From positions 36,766,001 to 36,830,000 of the forward strand of contig NC_135763.1 of NCBI RefSeq assembly GCF_052425735.1: a stretch of 64,000 bases of DNA. Reading direction: 5' to 3'. The stretch's first letter is position 1. Each line of letters starts with the position of its first letter. This document shows positions 11,801-34,600 of this stretch, one piece after another. The notes under the pieces were generated by a model. That model ran no database searches, was not told where the DNA came from, and was given only the letters and a program-made list of their open reading frames with translations. The translations under genes and the position numbers were made by a program. This stretch comes from Oculina patagonica (lineage: Eukaryota).

Positions 11801-14200
11801 TTTTTAAGACAATCACAATAGCGCCCAACCGGTATCTGGGAGGCCATGGGTTCGATTCCCGTCGGGGACTCAGAATTTTTCTTTGTCCCATGCTCGTGTC
11901 ATGTAGAACATCTTATCTTTATTATTTATTACCGAGCTTAAAATTTACCATCTTTATTATTTACTACAAAACTTGATGAATTCGACATTGCTGATCCTAG
12001 CAGTATACAGGACGCGTGTCATATATCAACCTAGTAAAATGGCCCAGCTCACAACGAGTCTCTCGTAGCTCAGTCGGTTAGAGCGCCCAACCTGGTAGTG
12101 TAGGTGTATACCCTCTCAGGTCTGACACTTCATGTACGTTTCGCGTATGAGGCCTTCATGTGATAGTCACCCATAGATCCAGTATTAAATAACCCCCACC
12201 CCCCCCCCCCCCACCCCCTCAAGAGCATTCTAACCTTCTCCATGTTAGTTACAAACAGAAAGATTGATAAAACGACATCATGCCATGTTCTTTCAGTTAC
12301 GATAGTTCTTCGTGCTGTGTGGCTATGTTTTTAATTACATGTAGTTTTCCGTTCCTTTATAGCTTTCCCACAGAACTAATAACAAGTAAGTAATACATTT
12401 GATATGTAAAAAGTTATTATTTGGAAACAAATCTAACAAATAAATCGATTATTTTGACTACACAAAATAATAGCCTTGGTACAACTTGCTTACTAAATGA
12501 GACTTAAGGGAAAGTCAAAAGATAGGGTTGGAAATCTTTTTGATTACCCTCACTTAATGCATATTTGATTTTCTGGTGGTTAAAACTTGTCGTGTTGCCC
12601 ATGTTGTTTATTCATTTTCATTGTGCATTCTTTTCTTTTACCCTTTAATTCTAAACGTTATGTTCTAAACGTTATATACAAATCTTGCAGCAACTACGGA
12701 TCTTGTAATGAAGCAAGAAATTCCTTGACTCCGCCGCTAAAACATCCTCAAGGTNNNNNNNNNNNNNNNNNNNNNNNNNNNNNNNNNNNNNNNNNNNNNN
12801 NNNNNNNNNNNNNNNNNNNNNNNNNNNNNNNNNNNNNNNNNNNNNNNNNNNNNNNNNNNNNNNNNNNNNNNNNNNNNNNNNNNNNNNNNNNNNNNNNNNN
12901 NNNAAGGGAGGGAGACACGGATGGGGGAAGAGAGAGACGGAGGGACGCAGGGAGGGAGGGAGGGACGGACGGACGGACGAACCGACGGACGGAAGAAGGG
13001 AAGGAAGGTACGAACAAAGAAGGGAGGGATAGAGGGACGGACGGACGGACGGACGGACGAATGGAAGGGGAAGAGAGGGAGGGAAGGAGGGAAGAAAGAA
13101 GGATCAATTGATGACAGTTATTTAGTATAACATTTGGATTGCTCACGCATAATTTATTATTGTACAGTGAAATATGTTATTTTTAACTCATTACAGCGAA
13201 GAATGGATTGGAACGTCAGCCAAACAAAATATTTACAGTCCAAAAGTGTTATTCCGTTGACGCGACATCTATGGGATTATCCCCCAGGCTTCCACCGAGA
13301 AAACCAGACCCTCATCGCCGCTCCGGAAGCTGTGACTCTGGCGTTCCTGTACAAAACCTTGTTAGGAATCGTAAGTGGATAGATCATCCGAAAGACAGCG
13401 CACATGAATCATGTCTGCTGTCTTTCAATTGCGTTGTTACGATGATAGCACGCCAAGGATTGGACCCAGACCCTACACTTTTTACTTACTCCGATTCCCC
13501 TCTTCATCCGGTAGGCGCTAAAATCCAATTTCTGTAATGTGAGGATCATCTAGGAGTACAATCCTGAGTTGAGAGGGACACTGTCATTAGTGTCATACCT
13601 CGCACAAGAGCACAAATCGTAGTTGGCTCTATTAATTACGCCAATGTAGCTGAAAAAAGAAACGTTTATAATTTACCCAAACTGTATCTACCTGTGTAGC
13701 TTAATGGTGTTGTATGCCAAGTCACTGAAGACCACCTCATTTAGGCTTCGGCTGCCATGTGGGCCTATCACTTACAAGATAAGAACTTGAGTAAAGATGC
13801 AGTAGTGATATCGAATTGAATCTAGTTATTTCTTTCGCAGGTACACTGAGCGAGCCTGTACAAAACCTTGTTAGGAATCGTAAGTGTACAAATCATCCGA
13901 AAGACAGCGGACATGAATCATGTCTGCTGTCTTTCAATTGCGTTGTTACGATGATAGCATGCCAAGGATTGGACCCAGACCCTACACTTTTTACTTACTC
14001 CGATTGTGTATTGGGGGTTTTAATCTTTTTTTTATTTAGGGTTTTAAGCGATTTTTTCGATCACATCGGTTTTTTATAAGTATATATATATATGTAAATA
14101 ATTTTTATAAGTACATTATTGTTGTAATACTGCGATAGTTATTAGTGTAAAGCGCATTAGATCATATGTACATGGATTTTTGCGCTATAGAAATAATAAA

Positions 14201-14255
<55 letters not shown>

Positions 14256-14958
14256 TCCTCTTCATCCAGTAGGCGCTAAAATCCAATTTCTGTAATGTGA
14301 GAATCATCTAGGAGTACAATCCTGAGTTGAGAGGGACACTGTCATTAGTGTCATACCTCGCACAAGAGCACAAATCGTAGTTGGCTCTATTAATTACGCC
14401 AATGTAGCTGAAAAAAGAAACGTTTATAATTTACCCAAACTGTATCTACCTGTGTAGCTTAATGGTGTTGTATGCCAAGTCACTGAAGACCACCTCATTT
14501 AGGCTTCGGCTGCCATGTGGGCCTATCACTTACAAGATAAGAACTTGAGTAAAGATGCAGTAGTGATTTCGAATTGAATCTAGTTATTTCTTTCGCAGGT
14601 ACACTGAGCGAGCCTGTACAAAACCTTGTTAGGAATCGTAAGTGTACAAATCATCCGAAAGACAGCGGACATGAATCATGTCTGCTGTCTTTCAATTGCG
14701 TTGTTACGATGATAGCATGCCAAGGATTGGACCCAGACCCTACACTTTTTACTTACTCCGATTGTGTATTGGGGGTTTTAATCTTTTTTTTATTTAGGGT
14801 TTTAAGCGATTTTTTCGATCACATCGGTTTTTTATAAGTATATATATATATGTGAATAATTTTTATAAGTACATTATTGTTGTAATACTGCGATAGTTAT
14901 TAGTGTAAAGCGCATTAGATCATATGTACATGGATTTTTGCGCTATAGAAATAATAAA

Positions 14959-15022
<64 letters not shown>

Positions 15023-18000
15023 TCCTCTTCATCCAGTAGGCGCTAAAATCCAATTTCTGTAATGTGAGAATCATCTAGGAGTACAATCCTGAGTTGAGAG
15101 GGACACTGTCATTAGTGTCATACCTCGCACAAGAGCACAAATCGTAGTTGGCTCTATTAATTACGCCAATGTAGCTGAAAAAAGAAACGTTTATAATTTA
15201 CCCAAACTGTATCTACCTGTGTAGCTTAATGGTGTTGTATGCCAAGTCACTGAAGACCACCTCATTTAGGCTTCGGCTGCCATGTGGGCCTATCACTTAC
15301 AAGATAAGAACTTGAGTAAAGATGCAGTAGTGATTTCGAATTGAATCTAGTTATTTCTTTCGCAGGTACACTGAGCGAGCCTGTACAAAACCTTGTTAGG
15401 AATCGTAAGTGTACAAATCATCCGAAAGACAGCGGACATGAATCATGTCTGCTGTCTTTCAATTGCGTTGTTACGATGATAGCATGCCAAGGATTGGACC
15501 CAGACCCTACACTTTTTACTTACTCCGATTGTGTATTGGGGGTTTTAATCTTTTTTTTATTTAGGGTTTTAAGCGATTTTTTCGATCACATCGGTTTTTT
15601 ATAAGTATATATATATATGTGAATAATTTTTATAAGTACATTATTGTTGTAATACTGCGATAGTTATTAGTGTAAAGCGCATTAGATCATAATGAGGGGG
15701 GGACTCGCATATGAAAGTGACGGGGATGCTCGTCGTCTCGCTTAGGGGTGTAAATTTCGGACTTTTGGTCTCGCTTAGGGTGTTCCGGGAAAAAACGCCC
15801 AAAACGCCAATATTTTTAGCCATAATGGTCTCGTTTAGGGTTACACACGAAGAAATATACAAATATAAACTCCATTCTAATTTTTTTTGTATCTTTTAGG
15901 GGTCAAGAAAGGCTTGAGCCACACCCAGATTGGTCTCTTTTAGGAGTTCTTTTCAAAATTTCCGACGAGCATCCCCGTCCGTTTCATATGGGAGTCCCCC
16001 CCCCCCCCGAGAGAGGAGCTACAGTGAAATCCGATTTCTCAATTCAAACGTCAAACACTCAAGTCTCAAACGTCAAACACTCAAGTTGTGAAACTTCCCG
16101 ATAACCCGAGCCCAAAGTTGCCAAAAGTTGTCTCTTTTGAACTGCTTCACTCAGTCGAAAACTGTTATTACCCCCTATTTCCCGGGCCAATTTTCGTTTT
16201 CCTTGGAGGCTAAAGAAATCGACATTTCACTGAGCGTCACAATATTCACAATAAATAGAACCTGCACTGAAATTTTTGTCAAAATTTGCCATTGATTGTT
16301 TTATTACAGGAACGTTATATTTGAAATAAAACTGGGGGTGCCTAAGATCGTTTAGCAACAGCACCTTGTTTATACTCAATAAATCCTTATAATATCACCA
16401 TGATTGTAGTCACGATGACTTGCTAAATTGACGTTTCCGACGATTATTTCTTATTCTACACTGAGAATTTGTCCATATTTCTTCTAAAGAAAGAGAGTTT
16501 TCACTCAATTTAAAACAACAGGTCACCGTACCCGTTTACGAGAAAATGACGATTTACCTCTCTGGCGATGGTCCAGCCGTAAAGAAAAAGCCGCCATTTT
16601 TCAGCAGGCGCGCGCTAATCACGCGTGAAATTATGCGCAGTAGGGATGCGCAATGCAATACTGAGGAATAACCTCAAGTTATTTTTTTTCCTTTAAAATA
16701 ATTGTTGGCGTTAGTCATGAGCTTTAGATCTCGAGCCTATACGCGGGTGTTGTATCGCAGGGCCTCTTTACACCCAGATGTATAAATGGGCACAGTCAAA
16801 TTTTTTGTAGTCGTTTTATCGCACAAACATTTCATCCAGGGGGGGGGGGGGGGGGAAGTAGTACTCCTTTTCAAGTCGCTTTATCATGCTGTGAAAGCCG
16901 GTGTTAAATTACTCAATTAAGTTCAGGCTGTATGCGAACATACCTATAAGCTATTAAAATAGCATAAATTTACTTCTTTACCCCTTTAATGAAGAGACAG
17001 GATATGCAGAATTTGACAGCTTTCTCGTGTGTAATGTGCCGGCGGAAACATTTGTTTTAGTAATACTGACTTGCATTGTTTTAACTGTATTATGCAACTA
17101 AATATTTCAGACGATCTGGGACTAAGTGATAGACGTGATAGACGTGATAGACGTGATAGACGTGATAGACGTGATAGACGTGGATCAGATCCCAATGTAA
17201 GTTCACCTGAATCTAATGGCTGTTTATGTTTCATTCCGAAGACGTTTAGCCTAAACTTCGTCGAAATATTAAATAAGAGCGATTGTCAGAGAATATCGAG
17301 AATTTTGCCCAAATAACCCTTTTAGTGAACTATTTTCAAAAAAGGCAATAAAAGGTTCCGATTTCTTTTACTTTTTTCAAACTTCGATAAAGTTGAAAAT
17401 TGGCCCGCAACGGAGGCCATGATGGGGGAAATTTGAGGCATATTCAACACGCTCGTGTAGACAAACCAAACAGTGCCTTAACATATCCTTTACACTGTTT
17501 GTTAGGCATCTCTTTAAGTTTTTTCTGTACTAAATTGTTTTCCATTTGTTTCCTTTTTAAAAAGTTATAATCTTCTACAAGAGGCCTACCTTAAGCGTGT
17601 TAACGATACGTCAAATATTGTAAAACTTCGACCTTCACTTCGACCTTCACTTCAAGCTGACAATCTCTTTTTTTTTAAGACAATCACAATAGCGCCCAAC
17701 CGGTATCTGGGAGGCCATGGGTTCGATTCCCGTCGGGGACTCAGAATTTTTCTTTGTCCCATGCTCGTGTCATGTAGAACATCTTATCTTTATTATTTAT
17801 TACCGAGCTTAAAATTTACCATCTTTATTATTTACTACAAAACTTGATGAATTCGACATTGCTGATCCTAGCAGTATACAGGACGCGTGTCATATATCAA
17901 CCTAGTAAAATGGCCCAGCTCACAACGAGTCTCTCGTAGCTCAGTCGGTTAGAGCGCCCAACCTGGTAGTGTAGGTGTATACCCTCTCAGGTCTGACACT

Positions 18001-19193
18001 TCATGTACGTTTCGCGTATGAGGCCTTCATGTGATAGTCACCCATAGATCCAGTATTAAATAACCCCCACCCCCTCAAGAGCATTCTAACCTTCTCCATG
18101 TTAGTTACAAACAGAAAGATTGATAAAACGACATCATGCCATGTTCTTTCAGTTACGATAGTTCTTCGTGCTGTGTGGCTATGTTTTTAATTACATGTAG
18201 TTTTCCGTTCCTTTATAGCTTTCCCACAGAACTAATAACAAGTAAGTAATACATTTGATATGTAAAAAGTTATTATTTGGAAACAAATCTAACAAATAAA
18301 TCGATTATTTTGACTACACAAAATAATAGCCTTGGTACAACTTGCTTACTAAATGAGACTTAAGGGAAAGTCAAAAGATAGGGTTGGAAATCTTTTTGAT
18401 TACCCTCACTTAATGCATATTTGATTTTCTGGTGGTAAAAACTTGTCGTGTTGCCCATGTTGTTTATTCATTTTCATTGTGCATTCTTTTCTTTTACCCT
18501 TTAATTCTAAACGTTATGTTCTAAACGTTATATACAAATCTTGCAGCAACTACGGATCTTGTAATGAAGCAAGAAATTCATTGACTCTGCCGCTAAAACA
18601 TCCTTAAGGTAATTAGTAAAATTCAGGAAGAAAGGAAGGAAGGAAGGAATGAAGGAAGGAAAGAAGGAAGGAACAAAGAAGGGAGGGATAGAGTGAAGGA
18701 GGGGGAGGGAGGGAGGGACGCAGGGAGGGAGGGGAGNNNNNNNNNNNNNNNNNNNNNNNNNNNNNNNNNNNNNNNNNNNNNNNNNNNNNNNNNNNNNNNN
18801 NNNNNNNNNNNNNNNNNNNNNNNNNNNNNNNNNNNNNNNNNNNNNNNNNNNNNNNNNNNNNNNNNNNNNNNNNNNNNNNNNNGGAAGAAGGAAAGGAAGG
18901 ATGGTAGGAACAAAGAGGGGAGGGATAGAGGGAGGGATAGAGGGAGGGAAGGAGGGAAGAAAGAAGGATCAATTGATGACAGTTATTTAGTATAACATTT
19001 AGATTGCTCACGCATAATTTATTATTGTACAGTGAAATATGTTATTTTTGACTCAATACAGCGATGAATGGATTGCAACGTCATCCAAACAAAAGATTTC
19101 CATTACAAAAGTGTCATTCTGTTGACGTGACATCTATGGGATTATACCCCGGGCTTCCACCGCCGATAAAGCGAGTCTGGCAACTCTGGAATC
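2856..19193 (+). CDS. PIK3AP1-like: BCAP/PIK3AP1/BANK1/Dof-like adaptor (DBB domain + ankyrin repeats + phosphotyrosine/proline-rich tail), copy 1. Exons 2856-2883, 3362-3411, 4042-4186, 4681-4959, 5981-6180, 7303-7480, 9285-9421, 9973-10153, 11259-11326, 12363-12385, 12691-12752, 13197-13370, 13841-13879, 14599-14637, 15366-15404, then either 17111-17196/18219-18241/18547-18607(stop) or 19062-19193
   Basis: GT-AG junctions with continuous phase. Translation VAVSPNK..LFIFNKPL..YEVEF..VIQTHAP..ELLDKATDPQQLLCDSL..YPTLIHFGAAHRL..CPAARQACALKNKDGMCPKELAVKHEHYEL resembles the BCAP DBB-ankyrin region as I recall it (LPTLLHFAAKYGL..CPGALQAYSVANKHGHYPNTIAEKHG). YIMM motif at 7390-7401. Confidence 0.85.
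5413..5485 (+). tRNA. trnR-ACG: tRNA-Arg(ACG), intronic
   Basis: 73-nt cloverleaf GGCCCCG...CGGGGTCG, anticodon loop CT-ACG-AA, GGTTCAAGTCC T-arm, T-run terminator just downstream. Confidence 0.9.
7796..9086. mobile_element. Foldback-type MITE with TGT..ACA termini and arrays of cgcaaaatgtaat repeats in both arms
   Basis: tgttatgccgcaaaatgtaat... versus ...attacattttgcggagtaaca, with roughly 200-bp inverted repeated arms. Confidence 0.8.
10395..10832 (+). mobile_element. MITE family copy (others at ~16245-16675 on + and ~20605-21090 on -)
   Basis: Same internal sequence in three places. The 20605-21090 copy has aggtcattcc...ggaataacct termini. Confidence 0.75.
11820..12092 (+). mobile_element. 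tRNA-derived repeat, circularly permuted (copy at 17691-17963)
   Basis: B-box half (gggttcgattcccg) precedes A-box half (tagctcagtcggttagagc). Flanked by direct repeat agcgcccaacc. Confidence 0.65.
12755..12903. other. Assembly gap in a purine-rich microsatellite (other gaps 18737-18882 and 40412-40635)
   Basis: N runs. Confidence 1.
13346..15690. repeat. Tandem array of ~0.5-0.77 kb intron+microexon units; later units carry an L2/CR1 3' tail with (TTA)n
   Basis: cctgtacaaaaccttgttaggaatcgtaagt occurs four times. Periods of 758 and 767 bp differ by three TTA units. The first unit lacks the LINE tail (empty site ccgattcccctc ~13495). Confidence 0.92.
15696..16008. mobile_element. MITE at the junction between the tandem array and block A2
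   Basis: TIRs gggggggactcgcatatgaaa..cggggatgctcgtcg / cgacgagcatccccg..tttcatatgggagtccccccc. No matching TSD. Confidence 0.8.
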
Positions 19194-19525
19194 GTAAGTG
19201 TACAAATTATCCGAAAGACAGCGGACATGAATCATGTCTGCTGTCTTTTAATTGCGTTGTTACGATGATAGCACGCCAAGGAGTGGACCCAGACCCTACA
19301 CTTTTTACTTACTCCGATTCCCCTCTTCATCCGGTAGGCGCTAAAATCCAATTTCTGTAATGTGAGGATCATCTAGGAGTACAATCCTGAGTTGAGAGGG
19401 ACACTGTAATACCTCGCACAAGAGCACAAATCGTAGTTGGCTCTATTAATTACGCCAATGTAGCTGAAAAAAGAAAGGTTTAAAATTTGCCCAAACTGTA
19501 CCTACTTGTGTAGCTTAATGATTAT
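16012..19525. repeat. Intragenic block duplication A2
   Basis: Near-identical to 10160-13705. Contains CAA>TAA at 18605-18607 and 6 rather than 4 DRR repeats. Confidence 0.93.
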
Positions 19526-19689
19526 CCATGTTGGCCTATCAATTAGAAGTCCACAATTCTTATTTTTTAAAAGCGTTCGGGCAAAGTCCCTTTTAATTCT
19601 TCATTTATCCAAAATTAATATCAACACCCTGTTCACATTTAAGCGATTCCTTATTTCCTTTTTTTTCTCTTTCATTGCTGTAATAACAG

Positions 19690-22600
19690 TGCAAACAAGC
19701 ATGTCTAACCAATCCAGTAGACCATTGTATGGCCACGTCCCGTCTTGGCCGGATGCAGAGGAAAAAGTTAATGAAATCATGGAAAATATTGCAGCAGTCA
19801 GCGACGGATCCAGACCTTCAGGTAAGTGGGGGGCCCGATTATCCAGACCCTGGATAATCGGCCATTTTCATCGTCGAAAACTGGGTGAACTCTAAGGGAA
19901 CGTTTTGGCGAACATCTTTGAAGCATTACCAAGAGTTTGCCTGGTCTCCCCGTCGCAGAGCATTTCAGCTCCAACGGACACAGCGCAGCCGACGCACAGG
20001 TCCGCAGTGTCAAGCTTTGCGGCGGTAATAAATAAGGGAAGAGGCAGAAGATTTGTCTAATATTTCAGCTTGGGACCTGCCAGTCGCTTTGCCTCAACTC
20101 TGACTTTCATTTTTATTGAGGTTCTCGCGCGCGCGCGTGCTAGAGACAACCTTTAAACAAATCTCGTGCGCATCTTCACAGGGCGACCACAACAGTCGAG
20201 GAATGAAATAAATTGATAAGAGAATAAAGGGTAAATATGAAAGTCATGGGGCCCCTTATTTATAATCCGATTAACCCGATTTAAATTTGACGATCAACAA
20301 GGTTGTATACTGATCATCCTATTTCCAAATCCCAATTTAACCTTTCTGAAATATTACCTCCGTATTCCCTCGAACAAAATGATCACGATCTAAGATCTTA
20401 CGTTCTAAGATCAACTGCACAAGGCCATTCTCACGTCTTCTAACTATAACTGTATTAATTGAATCCTTCAAAAATGGAGAAATGTTAAACACAAACGCTT
20501 ATAACTACTTTCTTTCAAGGAAATTTAGCAAAACTTAGGGAGGCGCGTGTGACATCGATGGGGAGATGTACGAAAAAAATTATAACTAATTATATACGGT
20601 GTTAAGGTCATTCCCCAGTATTGCATTGCGCATCCCCACTGCGCGTAATTTCAGGCTTGATTAGCCCGCGCGCACTAAAAAATGGCGGCTTTTTCTTTAC
20701 GGTTGGACCTCGCCAGGGAGGTTAATCGTAATTTTCTCCTAAACGAGTACGGCGAGCGGTCATTTTTTTCTGCTGTTTTGAATTGAGTAGTAACTTTCTT
20801 TCTGTAGAATAAATATGGACCAATTCTCAGTGAAGAATAAGGAACAATCGTCGGAAACGTGAATTTAGCCAGCAATCATGACTGTAATCATGTGCTGTTG
20901 CAATCGTGACTATAATCATGGTGATATTATAAGGATTTATTAGGTATAAACGAGGTACTGTTGCTCCTAAACGAGCATGGGCACCTCCCATTTTAATTTC
21001 AATATTTAAATTCCTGTAACTGCATAAACAGTCAATAGGCAAAGTTTGACAAAAATTTCAGTGCAGGTTCTATTTCAGTGGAATAACCTCAAACAGGCTG
21101 AGTTTTTACACGGGTCGGTTTTTACACGGAATGGGTCTTAAATTTTTTTTTTAGAAATCTCTAAACAATAGTAAAAAAACACCAAGGAAAAAAAAACAAA
21201 TGATCAAAGTCAATATAGAGTACCAATATTAAGAACTGGGTATTACTTTTTAAGGCATTTCGAATTGAGTACAGTCCATCGAATCAATTCCTGATGGGCC
21301 GACCGAGAAATCCCTTTTCTGTTGCTTTAGTTTAACAGGCCAATAGTTCAGAAATCACTACTTGCTCGAAGCCGAGATTTCATCGGCTACTAAATGAGTA
21401 TCTTAAAGTTATCTTTTACGATGGAAGAAGATGCTCAATAATCACCAAACATAGCGTGACCTTAAAGAATAGCAAGACAAGTATTAGATTTGGTTCAGCA
21501 ATACACTGAGGCTGTGTTGTTAAATCTATTATTTTGTTTATGGTAGATTCTAGCTGCGATGGGACTGGCTTGGTTGCTATGGAAACGGATTTCTCGCCCA
21601 GCTTCCTGGAAAACCTCACAACCGGCGAACACGAGATTGCTCAATCCACCTCCCCTTCCCCTGGCAATTACCCTTTAGGTTAGAATTGTAAGAAAAATAC
21701 TTGATTTAATGGTTCAGCAATACACTAAGGCTGTGTTGTTAAATCTTAAATATTAACTATTGTATTATTTATGGTAGATTCTAGCTGCGATGAGACTAGC
21801 TTGGTTGCTATGGAAACGGATTTCTCGCCCAGCTTCCTGGAAAACCTCACAACCGGCGAAAACGAGATTGCTCAATCCACCTCTCCTTTCGCTGGCCGTT
21901 ACCCTCCGGACAGCGACGGTAGTCCAGCTGTCGGATGTGCAACAGACGGGCATCAGTTCAACCTCGATCCCAGGGTCTCTCTCTCCCCACTCTTGGGGAC
22001 GGGGAGAGAGAGACCCTTGGAACAAGGTTGGCATCAGTTGACTTCGGCGCACTGCAATGGAGCGCGAATCATGATCCTTAATCCTAAACAAGAGTACAGC
22101 AAGGTGCCAATAAAGGGTGGGCCCAGAGGGAGATCAGAACAAAGAATTTTATGCGGAAAGGTACCACATGATAGTACTGTTCAATCGATTTTATATGATC
22201 TGTCTCACATTTGCTTGGGTTTTATCCATCCAAGATTTTACTCAGTTAGTTTAGGGTTAATCAATTGACTGATCGCAAAGAAGGTGACCAACGACTTAAT
22301 CGCCAAAAATAGTCTTTCAGAAACGGTCAAAATATTCGCTCGTTATTGCGTTTTTGTTCTTAGGTTGTGATGCAAATAGAAACTGAGCTTCCATTAAATC
22401 ACCTAGAAGTGTACGTAATGCGTGAAATCGAGGCTGAAAAGAAGCTAACTACCAAAGATGCAAATTCATACGGAGTTGGACCCACAAGAATTACCCAGCT
22501 AGATATCACACCAGCTAACGATCCTGGTAAGGGCAATTCTCCCTCCTGATTATGCCATTTAAATGTGAAGTTTTACAACTAGGTTAGAAGTCTATAACAC

Positions 22601-25600
22601 GTAAACGTAATATCACTTCCTTTTTTTAGGTAGCAATCCAACGTACATTTGCAAATTTGATCTTGATTCCGTGTACACGACATCGGATGGCAAAAAAATT
22701 TACAAACTGGAGAAAGTACATGGACTAGAATACAATCGATTTCAGCTCAAGGCTTACCTTCAATTTGTCAATGGAACTGCTGCAGTTCTTTATCCATACG
22801 AGTTTGTCCTCACGAGCGCTAAGATTCCAGGAAAACGTAAGTGAACGTTTTTTGATAGTCGTAATCGAGTGGCCATTGATATTAAGTAATTTTCAGACTT
22901 CCCTAACAATGTTTTAGAATTCAAACCTACGCACCCAGGTGAGTGACACGATACCGGATAGAAATTAGGATAAACTAGTATAACAGAAGATAAACTAAAT
23001 TAAACATAAAGCTTCTTCTCACAAAACTCTAAGCTGCCCCTGAAACTTCTTGCACCTCCTCTCGTACCTCCATTCTTCATGGCTTCCATATCACATCCTG
23101 AGTTAGTTCATTTAATTTGGTGAATTCGAAGTAGTAAAAATAAAATGTAGTGTTACGTAGGTCTGGAGAAGGCAATGTCTTTTATAGTTCTGGAATTGCA
23201 CTTGATAGCTCTTGTGCATCTTACATCTGGGCGCTCATTCTTGGCCAGTAGCTTTAAGGTCTTTTCGTGTCCCCTGTTTGGAATCTCCCGAGGTATGTCT
23301 CTTGGATTATCCTTAGACGGCCGGGTTTACACTTAGACGGAGATCTACTATTCTCGTGCCTGGGTTTTTTATGCTATCAAGCACTGCAAAAGCGAATGAC
23401 CTTCACATGAAAAAATATCCATGCTTCTACTGAGACTTTCTGACCCTTACATTTTCTTTATTCAGGTTCTTTGCCATTGACGGTGAATCGTTCATCTTCC
23501 GATGTTGTAACCAGTGAAGGCGGATCAGTGAGTGTGTATGGCGTCAACCTCACATGCCCTCCTGGTGCTTTAGATGATTCCGTGACCATCAAACTGACAT
23601 TAGAAGAACCTTACAAATACTGTGGTCCTTTAGTCCAACGTGGACTCGAAAACGATGTCATATTTGGTGCATCCGTAGTCAACTGCCAACCAAATGGCCA
23701 GAAATTCAAAGAAAATGTCGAGTTGACAATTGCATTAGATAGCAAGAAATCAAAATCCGCTGAAACCGCAATCGTTTTACATGGCACACGAACCAGTGAA
23801 GGAAAATATTCTTGGGAGGATATCACTCATAATTCCAAGTTCGATTCGAAAAAAGGAGAAATAAAAGCGGAAATTAATCACTTTTCACTAATTGCTGTGC
23901 TGTTGAGATTAACCTGGGTTCAAACAAAAGAAATTGTAACGCGGTTAAACTTGATGTCCTTCAAATACATGTTGTCGGTGCTTTTCAAAAGCAATCAACA
24001 ACATTTACCTTACGACGAGCTCGCTCTCGTGTTCATGAGCCAAGACATCTACCAGGAGCAGTTTTACAGAGAACACGATGATTGCGCTTTGATGCAGCTC
24101 AAAAAGAATGGATTTGAAGAACTTGACTCCAACGTTGGAGAGGAAATCAATTATGTCTACAACAAGGAAACCCTAACAGTCTCAATTCAACTTGGAGAGG
24201 ACTACAAACCGGCCAACAACCAGCAAGAATGCATCACATTTGCCGTGGACTCTTCCGTTTGGTGGAGTACCGGACATGTTATCAAGCTGCCATTGCAAGG
24301 CTCTACTGGCGAGGTCAAAATCATGTGTGGAAAGATCGTTGTTAAAGGCCAACATGGACATGTACTAGAGGATCATTTCTGCCAACGGGGTAAGCTTTAT
24401 ACTAATTGGAATCTGCCAAAAACCTCGCTTATTCAGGAAGTTGTAAAAAACATTTTCAAGACACGATCGAAAAAAAATGTATTTATTTTTAAGGGAAAGT
24501 TCATTTAGTATAACAAGGGGAAGGGGGGTAGCCTGAATTTCAGACATCCCTCTGTGCTCGCCTGCTTGCCAGAAGGGACGTCTGAACACATTTGAGCCTA
24601 ATGCCGTCCGGTGACGTCACTACCCGAAAACCGGGTTGTGATTTTGATTGGTTGATTTAAAAATTATTTGCATAATTATGTGAAATTATGACTGAATTTT
24701 ACCGCGCGAGTTGTAATTTGAAAACGTTTGGAAAGAGTTCGAAGGAGTTCACCTTCCCAGAAATGAATTTATTAGTCATTTACCTTGAGTTAGTGATTTC
24801 TGAACTCAGTGCCCACAGTCAAGTAGGATATTTTTGTATTGAATTCCGTTTCTTGATGCCTCAGTAACCGTCTAAATTGATTCATTTAAGTACTCACGAG
24901 TGTGTTGTATTTGTTCGCTGCGTAACATATTATATTTTGATCGCTAGATACAAGCTTAAAGCAAATCAGTTCAGATTAAATCGGTTCCGTAAAAGAATAT
25001 AGCCTGCAGTCGATTAAAATCTCATTCATTTGTCTCAAGTTTTCAATAGTTTACTATTAAAACAATTTTATACCCTGTAATCCTTTATTGAAGCGATTTT
25101 TCTTTCACAATTTCATGGCCTCGACAGAAACTTTTCCGCATGAATTAAAACCAAAGTGTAGTGACGTCACCGGACGGCATTAGGCTCAAATGTGTTCAGA
25201 CGTCCCTTCTGGCAAGCAGGCGAGCACAGAGGGATGTCTGAAATTCAGGCTAGAGGGGGGGGGTGAAGATATTGAAACTCGAAGCTTGAAATTTTAGCAT
25301 ACCCCCTCGCTAGCGCTTCAATTTTTTAGGAGTCCCTTTGGTAGTCGAAAAAATATCAGAGCCACCCCCTCTCCTGAGATCCTTTGCTCCCCTGATAAAA
25401 GATCGCTAGACTGTACAAATACGTTTACCGTTATTGTCTTCAATGGTTTATACTATGACAGACTTGAGATCCAGTTGTGATGAGGTCCCTGTTAAGTTCT
25501 TGAGTATTTATTGGTTTATTGTCGCAGAGTGCCTACCTCTACTCCGTTGCTTTACAGTTCTCAGTGACCCCATCAAGGGGTCACTGAGAACTGAGAACTA

Positions 25601-28600
25601 CCAATACTTGATTGATAGATTTATTAAAGCTGCAAAGTAGTTAGTTTATACAATCGATCTGACATCTAGTGAGAAACAAACAGTAAAATTTCCTGTTACA
25701 GAGTAATCGATTTTTAAAGTTCCCGTTAGCAGATTTTGAAATCTTGTTGAAACAATGTGTTTTTTTGTAATGAATTTGCCAACCCTACTTACAACACTGA
25801 GGCTAAATACAGTTCATTACACACACTACTTATAATACAAATGTTATACAACACAGCTACTTGCACTACAATACAGTTACCTTACTTACATTACAATACT
25901 AAAGTCGCTACTTACATCATTTACAACACGACTACAATTACATCTACAATCACTTCCACTTCTATACGATTTCGTTTTGTGCTGCTGATAATAACACAAT
26001 TAACGCAGGAGTAAATAACTTACAATAACCATTACTTACAAATTATATGGCTTAATTTATATACTTTGTTTTAAAGAATAATTATTTGGCTACAAAGGAG
26101 TTACCTATTAAGAAATCTATAAACTCTCAGTATATTTTTCCCATTTAAGATTAACATTTTGGCTGTCTTCCTGATTTTTTGATTTCATTGCATATAATTA
26201 TTATGACTATATTATGATAAAAAATTAAATGAGTCCAAAACCAACATGAGAGCTACATGGAGGTTGCTAAACGAGCTCATATACAAAAGGAAACCAAAAC
26301 TAAAATCCAACCAATCATTTAAAGCAGATGATCTGGAAATAACTGATCCAGCAGCAATTGCAAACAAATTTTGTCAATATTTTTCCAACATCGGGACAAA
26401 CCTGGCCAAGGGAATACAATCCAGCATATCCCACAAACATTTTTTATCTGGAACTTTCAATCAATCGATTTTTTTAAACTTGACAACGGAAGAAGAAATT
26501 ATTGCTATTGCAAACCAATTTCAATCAGGTAGAGCTGCTGGCTGTGACAACATTCCTATGTCTATTATAAAGCAGTCTATAAACATTATTTGTTCTCCAC
26601 TCTTGCGCACATTGTTAACTTGTCTATTATGCATGGCATTGTTCCAGACCAAATGAAAATCGCTCGTGTGGTACCCATTTTCAAAACTGGTGACAAAGCT
26701 ATTTTTTGAGTCTAATGCTTGCGTGCGCTTTGCGCATGCGCATTAGACTCTTTGTTATATGAAAAAAGCTGTTAGCAATCCCAAGGGAATGGTTCGGGAT
26801 CGATAATCGTTCGCTGTAATGTAGAAAACAATGATCAGCTGCAAGAACGGACTCCGTACGGACACGCACGATTAGTTTCAATTAAAAACAGCCAATCAGC
26901 GACACGTGTTCCCACGCATAATTAAAAGTTCTTTCTCAAGTCACGATTATTCAACACTTGAACAGGACGTAATAATTTTCCAGTTAAGACATTTAGGGAC
27001 TGGGTCGAGGCATGCGGAGGCTGTAGACGTGTTTCAAACTGCTCCGCGTAACTTCGTCAATTAATGATGTTTTTAGGCCTTAAACTCTTATGAATCCCAA
27101 GCGAACTAGAGAAAGCAGTAATTCGAGCGCGTCTGGTGCATCGCCCGTGGAAAAACGAGCAAGAGAGTTTAACTCGGGTACCTCGCCCGAGCGATCTACT
27201 GAGGTCTTCGAAATGTCGGCGGACGCCTTGGAGACGAAATTAGATCTTATCTTAAAAAGATTAGAGATCATGGACAATAAACTTGAGGAGATAAACACTA
27301 AGGTGTCCAACCTGGAGACCAAATTCAACTCATTAGAAGGCAGAGTGGAAAAATTAGAAAATGCTCATTCGACCACGAGGACGGCCGTACAAGAGTTACA
27401 AGATGGCCTCCAGGAATTCAATACGCAAGTCAACGAAGCGACAGCGGCCCGAGAAAAGGCGAGCGAGTTCTGTGAGAACAGGTACAAAGAATTGGAAAAC
27501 AAACTGTTGTATGCTGAAGTGTATCAAAGGCGAGAAAATTTGCGTTTCTACGGCATTAGCGAGGAAGAAGAAGGCGGAGACTGTCGCATGGTGCTTAATT
27601 CTTTCCTGGAACAGCAATGTGGTGTCCAAACAATGGGTATCGAATTTCAAAGGGTCCACAGGATCGGAAAGCCTCATGATGATGGAAGCCCTAGAGCAAT
27701 AATCGCTCGGTTTCTTAGATATAGCGACAGAGAAGCAGTTTTCTCAAAAGGAAAGTCGTTGAAAGATTCCGGGTATAGGATCGCTGCAGACCTGCCAAAA
27801 GAAATAGTTAACCGAAGGAAGCTCCAGTCGAAGAAGCTGGTCGATGCACGAAAAGCGGGTAAGATCGCGTATTTCAGCCGCGCTGAACCTGATAAATTGT
27901 ATATCGATGGACACTTAAACCCACTTTAATTATTGACGTTTACTTTTTTGTTTGGATTGTTTGATGCCTATATTTAGGCACAGCTTGAACTTATATTGAA
28001 CGCGAATTTGTAACTAGATAAGCTTGCCTCAGTCGTAAATGGCCTTGCTTTCTCCTTATTATGATTTAATAGACGAAGTTATGGGGAACAAAATAACCGT
28101 TGTAATCATCATTTCCCCTCTCCGCTTAGTTTTCGTATTTAGTTTGTGTTTATTTTTATGTTGTTTTTTGTTTCAATCAATTTCCTCGAGTCGTTCTACG
28201 GTGGCACAACAGTGTTTCTGGTCACCTTTTATGTTCTGTCGTTTTCGTTATTCGTTAGTGTCTTGTAGGGTGTTAATTGCAAATGCAATAAGGGAGAGTG
28301 TTAATTTTTTTTTTCCGCAAACAAACGCCTGCTTTACGCAATATTTTTCTTCACAACTTTTGTATGGAAATGAATTCAGGTAACGCTTTTTGTTATTCCA
28401 TTGACAGCTGCATTGGTGGCCTTTTACAAATTCTAAAAGTTGTGGTAAAATCATGACAGCAAGCAACTTTGCATTTAAACTATTATCCTTAAATGCTCGT
28501 GGGATTCGTTCTTTTGAAAAACGGAAAGCAGTATTTGGATGGGTAATGAGACAACAAGTCGACATTTGCTTTATTCAGGAAACCTATAGTACTAAGGAAG

Positions 28601-31600
28601 TTGAAAATGTTTGGAAAAAGCAGTGGAAGGGTGAGATGTATTTCTCGCATGGTTCTGTACATAGCAGAGGCGTGCTTGTTCTAATTAAAAATAATTTGGA
28701 ATTCCAAATCAAGTCCATGCGGCAGGACAAAGAGGGTCGTTTTATTTTTCTCGAGGCGCTGGTGCAAGATCAAAAGTTTTTATTAGTAAACATCTATGCT
28801 CCAAACAAAACGAGTGAGCAAACTCACTTTTTCGACAAAATCAAGGAGGAATTGGATAACATTGATATAGATGACGACTGTAGAATAATCATTGGGGGAG
28901 ATTTTAATGTTATTTTAGACCCCAACCTTGATGGTTGTGGGGGCAAACCAAAATTAAAGGAATCAGCTAAGCAGATTGAGAATATTTGCTTACTGTACGA
29001 TCTAGTAGACATTTGGCGACTTAGGAACCCAGGAATAAGACGTTTTACTTGGACACAGAAAACTCCTGTGATCCAAAGGAGGCTTGATTTTTGGTTAACC
29101 GATAATGCCTTGCAGGAGGAGATCGATCAGGTGAGCATTATTCCTTCCATAAAGTCTGATCACTCAGCCATTCTGTTGTCAGTTAATGGAATAGAAGAAA
29201 AATCACACGGTCCTTCCTTCTGGAAGTTCAATGCAAGTTTATTAGATGACAATGACTATGTAGCTCTAATAAACGATAGATACCAGGTTTGGGTTGACGA
29301 ATTTAGGGATATACAAGATCCCAGATTGCTTTGGGATCTCATTAAATTTAAAATTAGACAGGAGACAATTTCATACAGTAAACGCAAAGCGAGGGAAAGG
29401 AAGGCGAAATTGACATCTCTAGAGGAAAAATTGACAATCCTTCAAGAGCTTTGTGACCAGGATCCATCTACGGATAATCTGAATAGGCTAGAGATTTTGA
29501 AAACCGAGTATGACCTTCAATATGAATACATTGCACAAGGCGCTATAATCCGTTCAAGGGCAAGATGGTACGAGCAAGGAGAGAAAAGCAACAAGTATTT
29601 TTTGAACTTGGAGAGCTCTAGGGGTAAAAAGAGCACAATCCGAAAGATTCTTAAGGAGGATCAATCTCTGACAACGAATCCCAAAGAAATAATGGCCGAA
29701 CTTAGAAGTTTCTACTCAAATCTTTACCAAGTGAACTCTACTGGAGAAAGTGAAGCCTCATTAGACGCATTTCTTAACAGCGTATCCTTACCCACACTGT
29801 CTGAAATACAGAAAGAGAAGTGTGAGGTAGAATTGACTATCGGTGAATGTTTCAACATCTTGAATGGTTTTCAAAAGAACAAAACACCTGGTAACGACGG
29901 CCTTACAACGGAATTTTACTTAGCCTTTTGGCCTATTCTTGGAAAACATTTGGTAGCTTGTCTCAATTATGCACATAATCACGGAGAGTTATCTAACTCT
30001 CAGAAACAAGCGGTGATCACTTTATTAGAAAAGAAAGGAAAAGATAAAAGGCTGATCAAAAATTGGAGACCGATTTCCTTAATTAATGTGGACACCAAAA
30101 TAGCCTCCAAAGCGCTAGCTAAACGATTAGAGAATATACTTCCTGACTTGATTCATTACAACCAAAACGCTTATGTGAAAGGAAGATCAATATTTGACGC
30201 CGTCAGGACCATTGATGATGTATTAGAATATACAAAATGTAGTGATCAGTCGGGTATCCTTGTAACAATTGATTTTGAGAAAGCGTTCGATTCTTTGGAC
30301 CATAGATTCTTATTGAAGGTCCTTCGCACATTCAATTTCGGACCATCTTTTATTCAGTGGATTCGCACCTTTTACTCAAACGTGTCTAGTTGCGTAATAA
30401 ATAATGGATTTGCGACAAGTTACTTTAATGTTGACCGTGGTGTGAGACAAGGGGATCCGTTATCCCCTCTCTTGTTCATTCTTAGTTTAGAAGTTCTAGC
30501 TTGCAGTATTCGACAAAATGACAAGATTCAAGGGATCAAAATTGAGGATGAAGTTGTGAAAATCTCTCTTTTCGCGGATGACATGACATGTTTTTTGAGG
30601 AATAAGTCTTCGTATGAGAACCTGATTGTTAATTTAGATCTGTTTTCGAGATTCTCAGGTTTAAAATTAAATGAGGAAAAAACAGAATTTTTTTGCTTAG
30701 GGGTCCAAAATTTGTCTAAATCACCTTCCTATGAATTTAAACGCTCAATTAAGATTTTAGGCGTACACTTTGATTATGATCAACTTTCTAGGAAAAAGGA
30801 TAATTTCGAGGCAATTATAAAGTCTATTAAAAAAACATTAGGCATGTGGAAATGGAGGGGACTCACACTTATAGGAAAGATACAAATCGTTAAATCTTTT
30901 GCTATTCCGAAATTTATGTCGAAAGCGTCGCTTATTCATGTGTCTAAAGATCTCATACAGGCAGTCAATAAAGAACTTTACAGCTTTATTTGGAAAGGAA
31001 AGGATAAGGTTAAACGGTTAGCTTTGATTAATTGCATTGAAAATGGAGGGCTTAAGATGCTGGATATAGAATCTATGGTTCTAGCGCAAAGAATAATGTG
31101 CGTGAAGAAGTATATTGAGGACTATGTTAGTCCCTGGAAGATCTTCTTAAACCACTATTTGAAAAAACTAGGCGGAAAGTTCATTTTGCAGTGTCATTTT
31201 GATTGCCCAAAATTGCCCATTTTTTTACCCGAGTTTTACAAAGATTGTCTTGCTGCGTGGTCAACTCTTTCAAGTAAAGAAGTGGTTTCGTACGGGGATG
31301 TTATGAACCAATACTTGTGGAATAATAAAAACATTCTATGTGAAGGTAAATCTTTATATCATGCCTTTTTCCGCATAAACTGTGGGATAAGCAAAATCGG
31401 AGATTTAGTCTCTAAAGACAATACGTTTCTGGAAAGTGATAAAGTTCTCAGGTCAAAACTATCACCTAGTCAATTTTTCCTTTTAATGGGAGTAGTCAGT
31501 GCCATTCCAAAGGAATGGCGCTCCATTATCAAAGGTGAGAGTATATACCGTGAACCATACTCCTGCCCTGCAAATTCTTTTGAAGTGCCAATAAAGGGGG

Positions 31601-34600
31601 AAATGTTGGATATTTCTAACATTCCCTCCAAAATAGTTTATGAAGAGTTTCTTTCTCGTAAAGTAATTCCTCCTACTGCCCAAAAGAAATTTAAAAATGA
31701 CTATCCAAATCTCTCCGTCGATTGGAAGAAAATCTATTCTCTAGCGTTTAGAGTTAAGAGCTTTTCAGTACAAATTACTAAACCATATTGTGTATACAAA
31801 TGACAGACTTTATAAATTTAAGATTGTAGACTCGCCATTATGTGCTTTCTGTTACTCTGAAGATGAATCCCTCGAGCATTTATTGTTTCTTTGTAAAGCA
31901 AGCGAGGTATTCTGAAAGAGGTATTGTCGTGGTTGGCCATCCATAAGAATGAAGTTTTAAATTTTTCTCTTACCGATGTTTTGTTTGGTAAGTTTGATAT
32001 CGATACAGACTTTATGGTAGTTAACCATATTCTTCTTCTTGGAAAATATTTTATTTATAGGTGTAAGCTTGATAAGATTAAACCCTCTTTACCAGTTTTT
32101 AAGGCTAAATTAAGAGCTACTCTTAAATTAGAATTTTACATTGCCAGGAAAAAAGGTACACTTGCTCAACATTACAGAAAATGGAATATCTTTATTCCTG
32201 TATTAAGTTAGACTATTTCCTTTTTCCACTCTACCTTTTAAAAAAACTCAACCGAAAATATTTTAGGTCACTCTAATTTTTCGAAACCTGCTTTTTGACC
32301 TTTTGTTTAGAAAGCTGGTGTTTGCTTTGCATGTCTCTTTTTTCTTCTGCTCTCCATAGCATAATATACCTTGTTTATTTTTTAACGTGCGCTTGTTTGT
32401 AGTAAGTAATGTTAAGCTTGTAATAATTTATTGTTGTAGTGTAAGTAAGTATTGTATTAGTGTAAGTAAGTAGCGTTAGGACTGTAAGTAATGTTTAAAT
32501 TGTAAGTAGTGTTTCTTTTTTTCTTTGTATTTTTGTACTGTATGTTTGTATGGCAAGAAATTAAAATATTTAAAAAAAAAAAATAAAAAAAAAAAAAAGT
32601 TAAGACATTTGTAAGCTTTTTGTGAAAATAAATCTTCGTTTTCAGTTCAGTTAAGCACTTGTGTTTTCGTCTTGCTTAAAAAGCAAGACGTCTTTGAGAA
32701 AAAAATATTTCGACGGCGACTCGCGTTTATTTACACAATGCGACCAAATATTTATTTTGTTTTAAAAAATAGAAAACTTTACCTCGTATTTTGTATTTAA
32801 GTCATTCGAATTTTGACCAATTTTTTCTTTACAGTGCAAACAAAAACCTTCAAAAATAAAAGATGTACATGGATAAATGTAAATCAAGTTACGCGACTAA
32901 ATCAAAATGCGTTTGTTTGGCCGCTTTGCAGTATTACACTGTCCCGGCCTTTGCCATACACTGAAATCGAATTTCATGCTTTTACGACTCTCAGAGATCT
33001 TAAGTTCTTCTTACAGCTAGAAAAATCATAAAATGATGGTTACATTGATATGGAAGTGATGATTCGCGAAATTTGTACATCATGATAAACAGTCTTCGCT
33101 CCTGTGTATGGTAGCTCGATAATAATTGCCTAGTTTCCAGCGTTCAAAAGGTCATCATTATATTGACGTGAGCATTTACACCCGTTTTTAGGAAAATCTG
33201 TCACTAAGTGCTTACAGTACAATGGAGTAACAGTCACTATTTCAAGTGCTTTTGTTGCAAAATCTGTTTCAAGAGTCATCATCAAAATGGTGAAAAATCT
33301 GAAAGAAAACGATGTGAAGTTCTTCAACCCTTGTTGTAATGAACATGCTTTTTGTAAATCGTCACGCAATCTTGTCCAAATGTTTAATCGTTTCTGCTTT
33401 TACGGACAATACGGAAGAAGTAACATTAACTCCTGTTCATACTTTAAATTTTGTGAAGCATATAACATTTATGACTGTTTCGTTTTCATCCATAATCATC
33501 CACGATGCCCCTAGCTTGCTATAAGCATTTTAAATTAAACTCCCGAACACAAACCTCTAACCAATTTTAACCGGCTTACGAAAACCGCGCAATCTGTATC
33601 ACTATGCCATACGGCATTAGACTCATGTCACCCTTGGTGACATATTTTTTATAACTATAGACCTGTTTCCATCCTCCCTTGTTTCTCAAAATTCCTAGAG
33701 CGCATTTTGTATAATCGCATTTTAAGTTATCTAAGTGATTTTAACATTCTTTGTAATAACCAATATGGGTTTAGAAAAAATCATTCTACCACTCATGCAC
33801 TTATCGACTTATATGTCAAAATTTCGTCCGCTTTGGATCGTAAAGAGCATGCTGTTGGTGTTTTTTTAGATCTTTCTAAGGCCTTCGACACTGTGAATCA
33901 CGAAATTCTCTTTGACAAACTTTATCACTACGGTATTCGCGGACTGGCGCTAGAATGAGTGAAAAGTTACTTCAATGAAAGATCTCAATTTGTCGAATAT
34001 AATGGATTGAGATCAACCCCCCATAAGATCCGCTGTGGGGTTCCGCAAGGGTCAATTTTAGGCCCGCTATTTTTTATCCTATACATAAATGATTTGAACA
34101 ATGCTTCAAACCTTGAGTCAATCCTATTCGCAGATGATACAAATTTATTCATCTCACACAAAGACCCAGATTTCTTAATTAGTACACTAAACGGTGAATT
34201 AATTAAACTGTCAAAATGGTTCAGAGCAAACAGACTCTCTTTGAACTTAACTAAAACAAATTTAATGGAATTTAAACCACGACAAAAACAATCTTCTTCG
34301 GACTTTATGTTGTTATTAATGAAACAACTATTGCACAGGTCAATGAAACAGTCTTTCTTGGGGTAGTTTTAGATGACAACTTAACTTGGAAGTCTCATAT
34401 ATCTAGCTTAGCGATTAAAATCTCTAAGGGCCTGTTTACATGGAGGTGGGGGACCCCGGGTAGGTGAGGTAACCCGCCCAGCCGTAGTCGAAAATTAGCT
34501 CGCGTTTACATGCAATCTTATCACCCCGGGGTCCCGGGGTGACCTTTTCACATAAACAAATACATTTCATTGAAGTCGCATATCGCATTTCGTTTTGTTC

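Follow-up and report, generated by a model that had tools for sequence, protein, structure and literature searches.

A putative self-cleavage site at the ZU5/UPA junction of a coral-restricted death-domain protein family

Introduction

Does a coral death-domain protein cut itself where its ZU5 and UPA domains meet? The question is raised by a 64,000-nucleotide stretch of the Oculina patagonica genome (NCBI RefSeq assembly GCF_052425735.1, contig NC_135763.1, positions 36,766,001 to 36,830,000 of the forward strand), hereafter called the window and numbered from its first letter, in which a gene with a ZU5-UPA exon carries the tripeptide His-Phe-Ser (HFS). Self-cleaving ZU5-UPA junctions are the arming switch of PIDD1, NLRP1 and CARD8 in vertebrates. 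An initial annotation of the window, made from the sequence alone, had read the tripeptide as an intact autoproteolysis motif of this kind, and had suggested that self-processing would separate an N-terminal adaptor part from an effector fragment comprising UPA, a death domain, a helical domain and a RHIM-like motif.

Self-cleavage of invertebrate ZU5/FIIND fusions for effector deployment has already been proposed (PMC8195603), and ZU5 and death domains have been listed among the domains combined with cnidarian NLRs (PMC8260672), so the advance made here lies in defining a family and its site and not in the principle. What is new is a coral-restricted family with an F-[S/T/C] site, a constant C-terminal cassette and diverse upstream modules. 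Judging from sequence comparisons and structural models, we consider it on balance probable that the protein encoded in the window self-cleaves between F393 and S394 (numbered from a putative start codon at 21771).

Results and Discussion

The HFS Motif Lies at a ZU5/UPA Junction

The codons cac ttt tca encode His-Phe-Ser in the frame of an open stretch (23444–24505), and the 13-residue peptide around the motif is identical to the one quoted in the initial annotation. The exon that contains it (Table 1) begins after a polypyrimidine tract with AG at 23464–65, an acceptor backed by a spliced RNA contig from the public run X1, and ends at a GTAAG donor from 24390; Pfam ZU5 (PF00791) matches its residues 10–89 (E 2.2e-7, 31.5 bits, cut-off 21). 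The tripeptide alone is not beyond chance, as HFS turns up 24 times when the window is translated in six frames, a count that would suit an explanation in which it has nothing to do with an autoproteolytic site. Its place at the ZU5/UPA junction and its conservation across the family are beyond chance, and the family alignment, with an invariant Phe and a conserved nucleophile over 57 sequences, practically refutes a coincidence, the probability of which we consider negligible.

The AlphaFold2 (AF2) model of the exon has a predicted local distance difference test score (pLDDT) of 90.1. Comparison with Foldseek and VIA-align over residues 6–307 gave ZU5-ZU5-UPA structures of ankyrin-B and ankyrin-G, with or without the death domain, at Z 15–16 (ankyrin ZU5 range, Z 13–16), and the same model scored Z 15.4 against ankyrin-B (4d8o), 12.1 against UNC5b (3g5b), 9.4 against rNLRP1 and 9.0 against CARD8, while the ZU5 half alone superposed on ankyrin-R ZU5 with a root-mean-square deviation of 2.1 Å. 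Fold matches in the Swiss-Prot part of AFDB were ankyrins, UNC5A-D, UNC5CL (E 1.4e-14), MACC1, SH3BP4 and DTHD1, and PIDD1 was not among the top 30. In the model, the UPA fold directly follows the ZU5 fold, which is the arrangement of a ZU5-UPA supramodule.

The same model bears on the site itself. Strands run through residues 131–138 and 141–147, and residues 139–140 form a kink between them, outside any strand. In CARD8 and PIDD, the cleavage site was described as a strained turn in which the Phe is buried, directly ahead of a long strand (PMC3210808), and the strand break at residues 139–140 fits this description. When the family profile was compared with PDB sequences, "ehFSli" aligned to "aRFWLi" of ankyrin-2 at the end of ZU5C; at E<=10 this search returned ankyrins (best E 4e-11) and ZO-1, with NLRP1 and CARD8 absent. 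A single-sequence search of the PDB sequences gave only chance matches to ribosomal S15, which made the profile search necessary.

The ZU5 half also matches subdomain B of the GAIN domain (Z 8.9–10.3). The VIA alignments end with model residue 151 at CD97 542 (8ikj), residue 149 at CD97 540 (9mqr) and residue 149 at BAI2 921 (8oek), and, assuming an ungapped terminal strand, all three would place Ser140 of the exon on S531 of CD97 or S912 of BAI2. Cleavage of CD97 is blocked by S531A (PMC12519206), and the His of the G protein-coupled receptor (GPCR) proteolysis site (GPS) in BAI2 is H910, hence the Ser is residue 912 (PMC13062082). Taken together, the models place the F-S pair at the position homologous to the cis-autoproteolysis site of PIDD1, UNC5CL, NLRP1, CARD8, and the GAIN and Nup98 folds. 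The earlier reading of an intact HFS at the ZU5/UPA boundary is thus borne out, with the DNA read, the profile alignment, the kink in the AF2 model and the end offsets of the structural alignments in agreement.

The Nucleophile Is Conserved in a Family Restricted to Corals

Only 68 relatives came out of an exhaustive HMMER search; those with names are all from stony corals, and the last few matches are bacterial ZU5 proteins. Conservation was counted over 57 non-identical family sequences. The Phe of the motif is invariant (57/57), and the residue that follows it is Ser in 51 sequences, Thr in three, Cys in two and Phe in one, never Ala or Gly. Such a restriction to S/T/C is the pattern expected if a side-chain nucleophile were under selection. 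The lone sequence with Phe in place of the nucleophile (GFF) is P0010, a 224-aa fragment nearest to Stylophora P0002, which may be non-cleaving or decaying.

The genome of O. patagonica (529 Mb) contains at least 13 copies of the ZU5-UPA exon, of which 12 are free of stops and four form a cluster near the window. All 13 paralogs carry xFS (HFS in four, QFS in four, GFS in three and RFS in two), and the ratio of nonsynonymous to synonymous substitution rates (dN/dS) of the exon among paralogs is 0.21–0.39, the copy in the window giving 0.39 against its nearest paralog. The His at position −2 is accordingly present in only 4/13 of these paralogs, and in 22/57 of the family. The conserved core, as the alignment suggests, is F-[S/T/C], as in the "FS" site of NLRP1 and CARD8, and the initial annotation, which had taken the whole HFS of the PIDD1 type as the unit, has to be corrected on this point. 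In CARD8, Phe and Ser are essential and the residue at −2 is marginal or nearly dispensable (PMC3210808).

A second histidine is also a candidate general base. His105 of the exon lies 35 residues before Ser140 and is found in 50/57 sequences; the seven that lack it all carry His at −2, and every sequence has at least one of the two (raw Fisher p = 6e-4, kinship ignored). Most sequences without His105 fall in one poorly resolved clade of the tree, and we treat the complementarity as a lead only. In rNLRP1, a His 27 residues upstream, next to the Ser, is catalytic and required (bioRxiv 10.1101/2020.08.13.250241).

Self-Cleavage and the Non-Cleaving Alternative

In the mechanism that we propose, Ser140 (S394) would be deprotonated after folding by His138 or by the distal His105, and would then attack the carbonyl of Phe139, giving an N-to-O acyl shift followed by ester hydrolysis. 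Cleavage would yield an N-terminal fragment, made up of the variable part and ZU5, with ...AEINHF as its end, and a C-terminal fragment with SLIAVLL... at its start, the latter carrying UPA, the death domain and a helical-plus-beta domain. On the analogy of NLRP1/CARD8 and PIDD1, both would remain associated without a covalent bond, and, again purely by analogy, the UPA-death-domain fragment would be active only once freed from the N-terminal part.

Alternatively, the protein might be a non-cleaving structural ZU5-UPA-death-domain supramodule of the UNC5A-D/ankyrin type, in which the Phe is a buried anchor, the Ser serves packing or hydrogen bonding, and a change between closed and open forms regulates the death domain. 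We regard this as a serious, though rather unlikely, explanation. The closest solved relatives by sequence and by fold are the ankyrin ZU5-UPA structures and UNC5b, which do not cleave, and canonical Unc5 proteins do not autoprocess (PMC10084454); the His at −2 is variable; and in the GAIN fold an intact H-X-S/T motif is insufficient, since BAI2, with HLS, is uncleaved (PMC13062082). However, the residue after the Phe is S/T/C in 56/57 sequences, without the common exchanges of Ser for Ala or Gly, where a non-cleaving ankyrin has Trp, and a candidate general-base His is kept in every sequence.

Further points weigh, like the non-cleaving relatives and BAI2, against self-cleavage of the coral protein. 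Neither the Pfam UPA model nor FIIND (PF13553) matched the exon, for which the scan at E<=1 gave ZU5 and, apart from that, just a spurious match to SNF2. Placing Ser140 on the GPS relies on the end offsets of alignments and not on a residue-by-residue alignment. His105 is only a candidate equivalent of the catalytic His of NLRP1 and CARD8, and an independent-pairs test of the His105/His138 complementarity on the tree, underpowered with three supported pairs, was not significant (p 0.25–1). At the level of the gene, RNA contigs reach only to ~24170, and the death-domain exon is preceded by an intron of 11.95 kb with a long interspersed nuclear element (LINE) and other reverse-transcriptase fragments. 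Finally, cleavage in this family is a prediction from sequence and models.

Comparison with Known ZU5-UPA and GAIN Systems

The coral protein shares with the FIIND of NLRP1 and CARD8 the order of ZU5 and UPA, F-S at the junction, a residue before the Phe that is not conserved, a conserved ZU5 His ~30 residues upstream and a probable death-fold domain after UPA, and its paralogs have same-strand NB-ARC, TPR or TIR open reading frames (ORFs) at most 8 kb upstream. It differs in that the exon has no Pfam FIIND match, a death domain takes the place of CARD, an extra C-terminal domain of ~450 aa is present, and the fold similarity is Z ~9, compared with 13–16 for ankyrins. Cleavage, DPP8/9-type restraint and functional degradation are hypothetical for the coral protein.

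With PIDD1 it has in common H-F-S at the end of ZU5, followed by UPA and a probable death domain, so that the C-terminal fragment would carry the death domain. However, PIDD1 has leucine-rich repeats (LRRs), two ZU5 domains and two cleavage sites (between F445 and S446, and at S588; PMC9162469), whereas the coral protein has one ZU5, no LRR and a large extra C-terminal domain, and the His of its motif is variable across the family. Orthology to PIDD1 was rejected given the single ZU5 and the absence of LRR or any other Pfam domain from the spliced upstream exons.

UNC5CL offers a nearer precedent in architecture, being a single ZU5-UPA-death-domain module and a fold match of the coral model, and it is reported to keep autoproteolytic activity (PMC10084454). 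UNC5CL, however, retains a membrane-spanning helix and has nothing beyond its death domain, whereas the coral protein runs more than 500 aa past this domain and has N-terminal exons without a Pfam family. The ankyrin and UNC5A-D supramodules have the same domain order and are the closest by profile and by structure, but they do not self-cleave, and at the positions of His-Phe-Ser the ankyrins have Arg-Phe-Trp and UNC5b has Leu (PMC3210808). The GPS of adhesion GPCRs lies in a subdomain that resembles ZU5, its H-X-S/T falling on H-F-S by end offsets, but GAIN domains are extracellular, have Leu instead of Phe at −1, and lack UPA and the death domain.

Gene Structure and Transcription

Contigs from public RNA runs were placed on window positions 18900–24800. 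An X1 contig of 886 nt aligned in four blocks (21836–22158, 22362–22525, 22629–22836 and 23466–23665), and an X2 contig repeats the first of its joints. Once shifted by the ambiguous bases, all joints correspond to canonical GT-AG introns (22160/22364, 22526/22630 and 22836/23466), and the exons are in phase, with a frame open from the ATG at 21771 through the ZU5-UPA exon. The gene is transcribed, spliced and under purifying selection. An in-frame stop at 21747–49 precedes the ATG, and a further upstream 5′ exon may be spliced to a possible AG acceptor at 21776–77.

Table 1. Features of the ZU5-UPA gene in the window (positions of the window; residues of the ZU5-UPA exon unless stated).
Feature	Position	Strand	Basis and remarks
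Putative first coding exon	21771..22160	+	ATG 21771; X1 contig 21836-2216x spliced to next exon
Coding exon, no known domain	22364..22526	+	Spliced contigs X1, X2; alternative start ATG 22370
Coding exon, no known domain	22630..22836	+	X1 contig joins 22836 to 23466; phase fits
ZU5-UPA exon	23466..24389	+	308 codons; ZU5 to ~23884, UPA from 23885
His105 (His359 from ATG 21771)	23780..23782	+	Motif vLHGt; candidate distal general base, NLRP1/CARD8 type
HFS site	23879..23887	+	His138-Phe139-Ser140 = H392-F393-S394 from ATG 21771
Predicted scissile bond	between 23884 and 23885	+	
Death-domain exon	36344..36574	+	tblastn; splice sites
Helical-plus-beta domain exon	37655..38998	+	447 aa; tblastn, splice sites
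Small coding exon	39666..39824	+	Boundaries inferred: open frame, in-phase AG/GT; kept next to paralogs
Small tail exon	40053..40146	+	Conserved 16-residue motif; tblastn to P0070 residues 856-892

A Pfam scan of the three exons spliced upstream of ZU5 (21.8–22.8 kb) gave no domain, and these exons were not found upstream of other paralogs. The first exon contains a repeat-derived stretch (21950–22039). A high-copy repeat in this open exon (21855–22051) has very high contig depth in 4/4 runs and many loose contig ends at 21951–21995, and the X1 transcript contig crosses it with a 9-base gap. The start of the exon, including sequence before the ATG (21750–21920), is duplicated ~240 bp upstream (21510–21680); this copy is covered by an X1 contig (21444–21678) and may be an alternative first exon.

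It could also be supposed that the gene is a decaying or non-functional paralog that inherited the motif, which would then be irrelevant, and whose intron between UPA and the death domain was stretched by retroelements from ~1 to 12 kb. This intron indeed holds a LINE with intact ORFs and reverse-transcriptase fragments, in the paralogs the helical exon begins only ~1–2 kb past the end of the ZU5-UPA exon, and the RNA contigs stop at the end noted above. However, every exon has an open frame and canonical splice sites in phase, two runs contain the spliced upstream exons, the dN/dS against the nearest paralog is 0.39, and long introns bearing transposons are ordinary in animal genes. We therefore consider decay very improbable. 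In the LINE (27090–31803), ORF1 (279 aa, with a coiled coil) and ORF2 (1116 aa, with endonuclease and reverse transcriptase) are both open, and the further reverse-transcriptase fragments of the intron include 26246–26656 and 33641–34363.

Downstream Exons and the C-Terminal Domains

Downstream exons were located by tblastn with Stylophora XP_022786988, a Montipora protein and a Desmophyllum protein, which placed them at ~36343–36576, 37654–39000 and 40055–40162. The first scored 15.7 bits with Pfam Death, below the cut-off of 22.6, and a Desmophyllum relative, P0022, 60–70% identical, scored 27.1 bits. The second encodes a 447-aa domain that adjoins every paralog, and its AF2 model (pLDDT 83.5) has a helical bundle (residues 1–250) and a beta domain (258–430). 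Foldseek with this domain gave no match in the PDB at E<=0.001, and an Atlas feature search with the C-terminal domain gave no usable match. In AFDB clusters, it matched a coral protein of 984 aa that bears the automatic name "Netrin receptor UNC5" (53% identity), and it also matched residues 344–773 of a 774-aa "CARD domain-containing protein" (A0A401T1I4, E 2.7e-13).

The tail motif KGHVCV[AT]GxNTxL[NH]M is common to five other paralog loci (L015, L016, L017, L021 and L023) and Stylophora. The donor of the tail exon at 40147 is inferred, and read-through would end at the stop at 40226–28. The motif resembles the core of RHIM with one extra residue. No Pfam family, including RHIM (PF12721), matched the tail exon (40055–40162) at E<=0.01, which is a weak negative with a query of only 36 aa.

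The architecture is thus an N-terminal region without known domains, followed by ZU5, UPA, a death domain, the helical-plus-beta domain and a short conserved tail. Compared with the initial annotation, UPA stands by its fold and the helical domain by tblastn and its model, the death domain holds with the reservation that the exon in the window scores below the cut-off, and the RHIM-like label finds no Pfam match. The "N-terminal adaptor part" is unsupported, given three RNA-spliced upstream exons without a Pfam domain, and so is a linkage to the DBB exons at 4–10 kb.

Upstream Modules of the Paralogs

Modules upstream of the paralogs were taken as same-strand ORFs within 8 kb upstream of the copies (regions L033, L034, L035, L036, L038 and L039). 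A weak DED, NB-ARC and TPR precede paralog L005, TPR precedes L010 (by Pfam) and L007 (by TPR-like sequence only), TIR precedes L006, a GT4 "conflict-system" glycosyltransferase precedes L012 (E 3.5e-70), and GBP fragments precede L008. In L034, the TIR exon is preceded by a Ty3/gypsy-type element whose pol ORF encodes 1147 aa. In this genome, the upstream modules are candidates for being in the same transcript as the ZU5-UPA exon of the paralog. In another assembly, a single ORF of 734 codons encodes TPR repeats and then ZU5-UPA, with a death-domain-sized ORF and a 446-aa ORF after it. An exact-sequence look-up of Stylophora protein P0070 gave no contig.

One may go further and suppose that these proteins form a modular family of "tripwire" immune sensors in stony corals, working like NLRP1 and CARD8, a suggestion that we think decidedly unlikely as it stands. 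The N-terminal sensors would be interchangeable, namely NB-ARC-TPR, TPR, TIR, the GT4 glycosyltransferase, GBP-like or, as here, novel sequence, and a self-cleaving ZU5/UPA junction would join them to a constant cassette of UPA, the death domain, the helical-plus-beta domain and an amyloid-like tail motif. The signalling cassette would then be set free once the N-terminal part is destroyed.

Neighboring Genes and Other Features of the Window

On either side of the ZU5 gene lies a same-strand set of DBB (Dof/BCAP/BANK) exons (4009–10158 and 59577–60194). After the first set come an ankyrin-like exon, a Y-x-x-M stretch (EEYIMM, ~7.4 kb) and an exon that is rich in proline and terminates with a stop. 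Only three DBB loci are present in the genome, two of them in the window and none near another paralog, and it is quite likely that the DBB exons are separate neighboring BCAP-like genes and not the N-terminal part of the ZU5 protein. The region that separates the DBB exons from the ZU5 gene holds a ~2-kb segment duplicated 6 kb apart (10160–12330 and 16030–18190) and a ~760-bp unit in three tandem copies (13650–15601). An open frame at 43540–44088 matches Pfam 7tm_2 (E 5.9e-11) and corresponds to the last helices of a secretin/adhesion-type seven-transmembrane receptor, with no other receptor exon seen near it. Masked runs of N are present at 12755–12903, 18737–18882 and 40412–40635.

Conclusion

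A coral-restricted, expanded family keeps the junction nucleophile of ZU5-UPA proteins, linked to a death domain as well as a conserved domain without a fold match in the PDB. This bears on whether the activation logic of self-cleavage exists in cnidarian immunity or cell death, and the family also gives a handle on an uncharacterised effector domain. If the tripwire reading were true, functional degradation would be a mode of activation in cnidarians, and the helical-plus-beta domain would be a new death-domain-linked effector domain, seen also in a vertebrate CARD protein.

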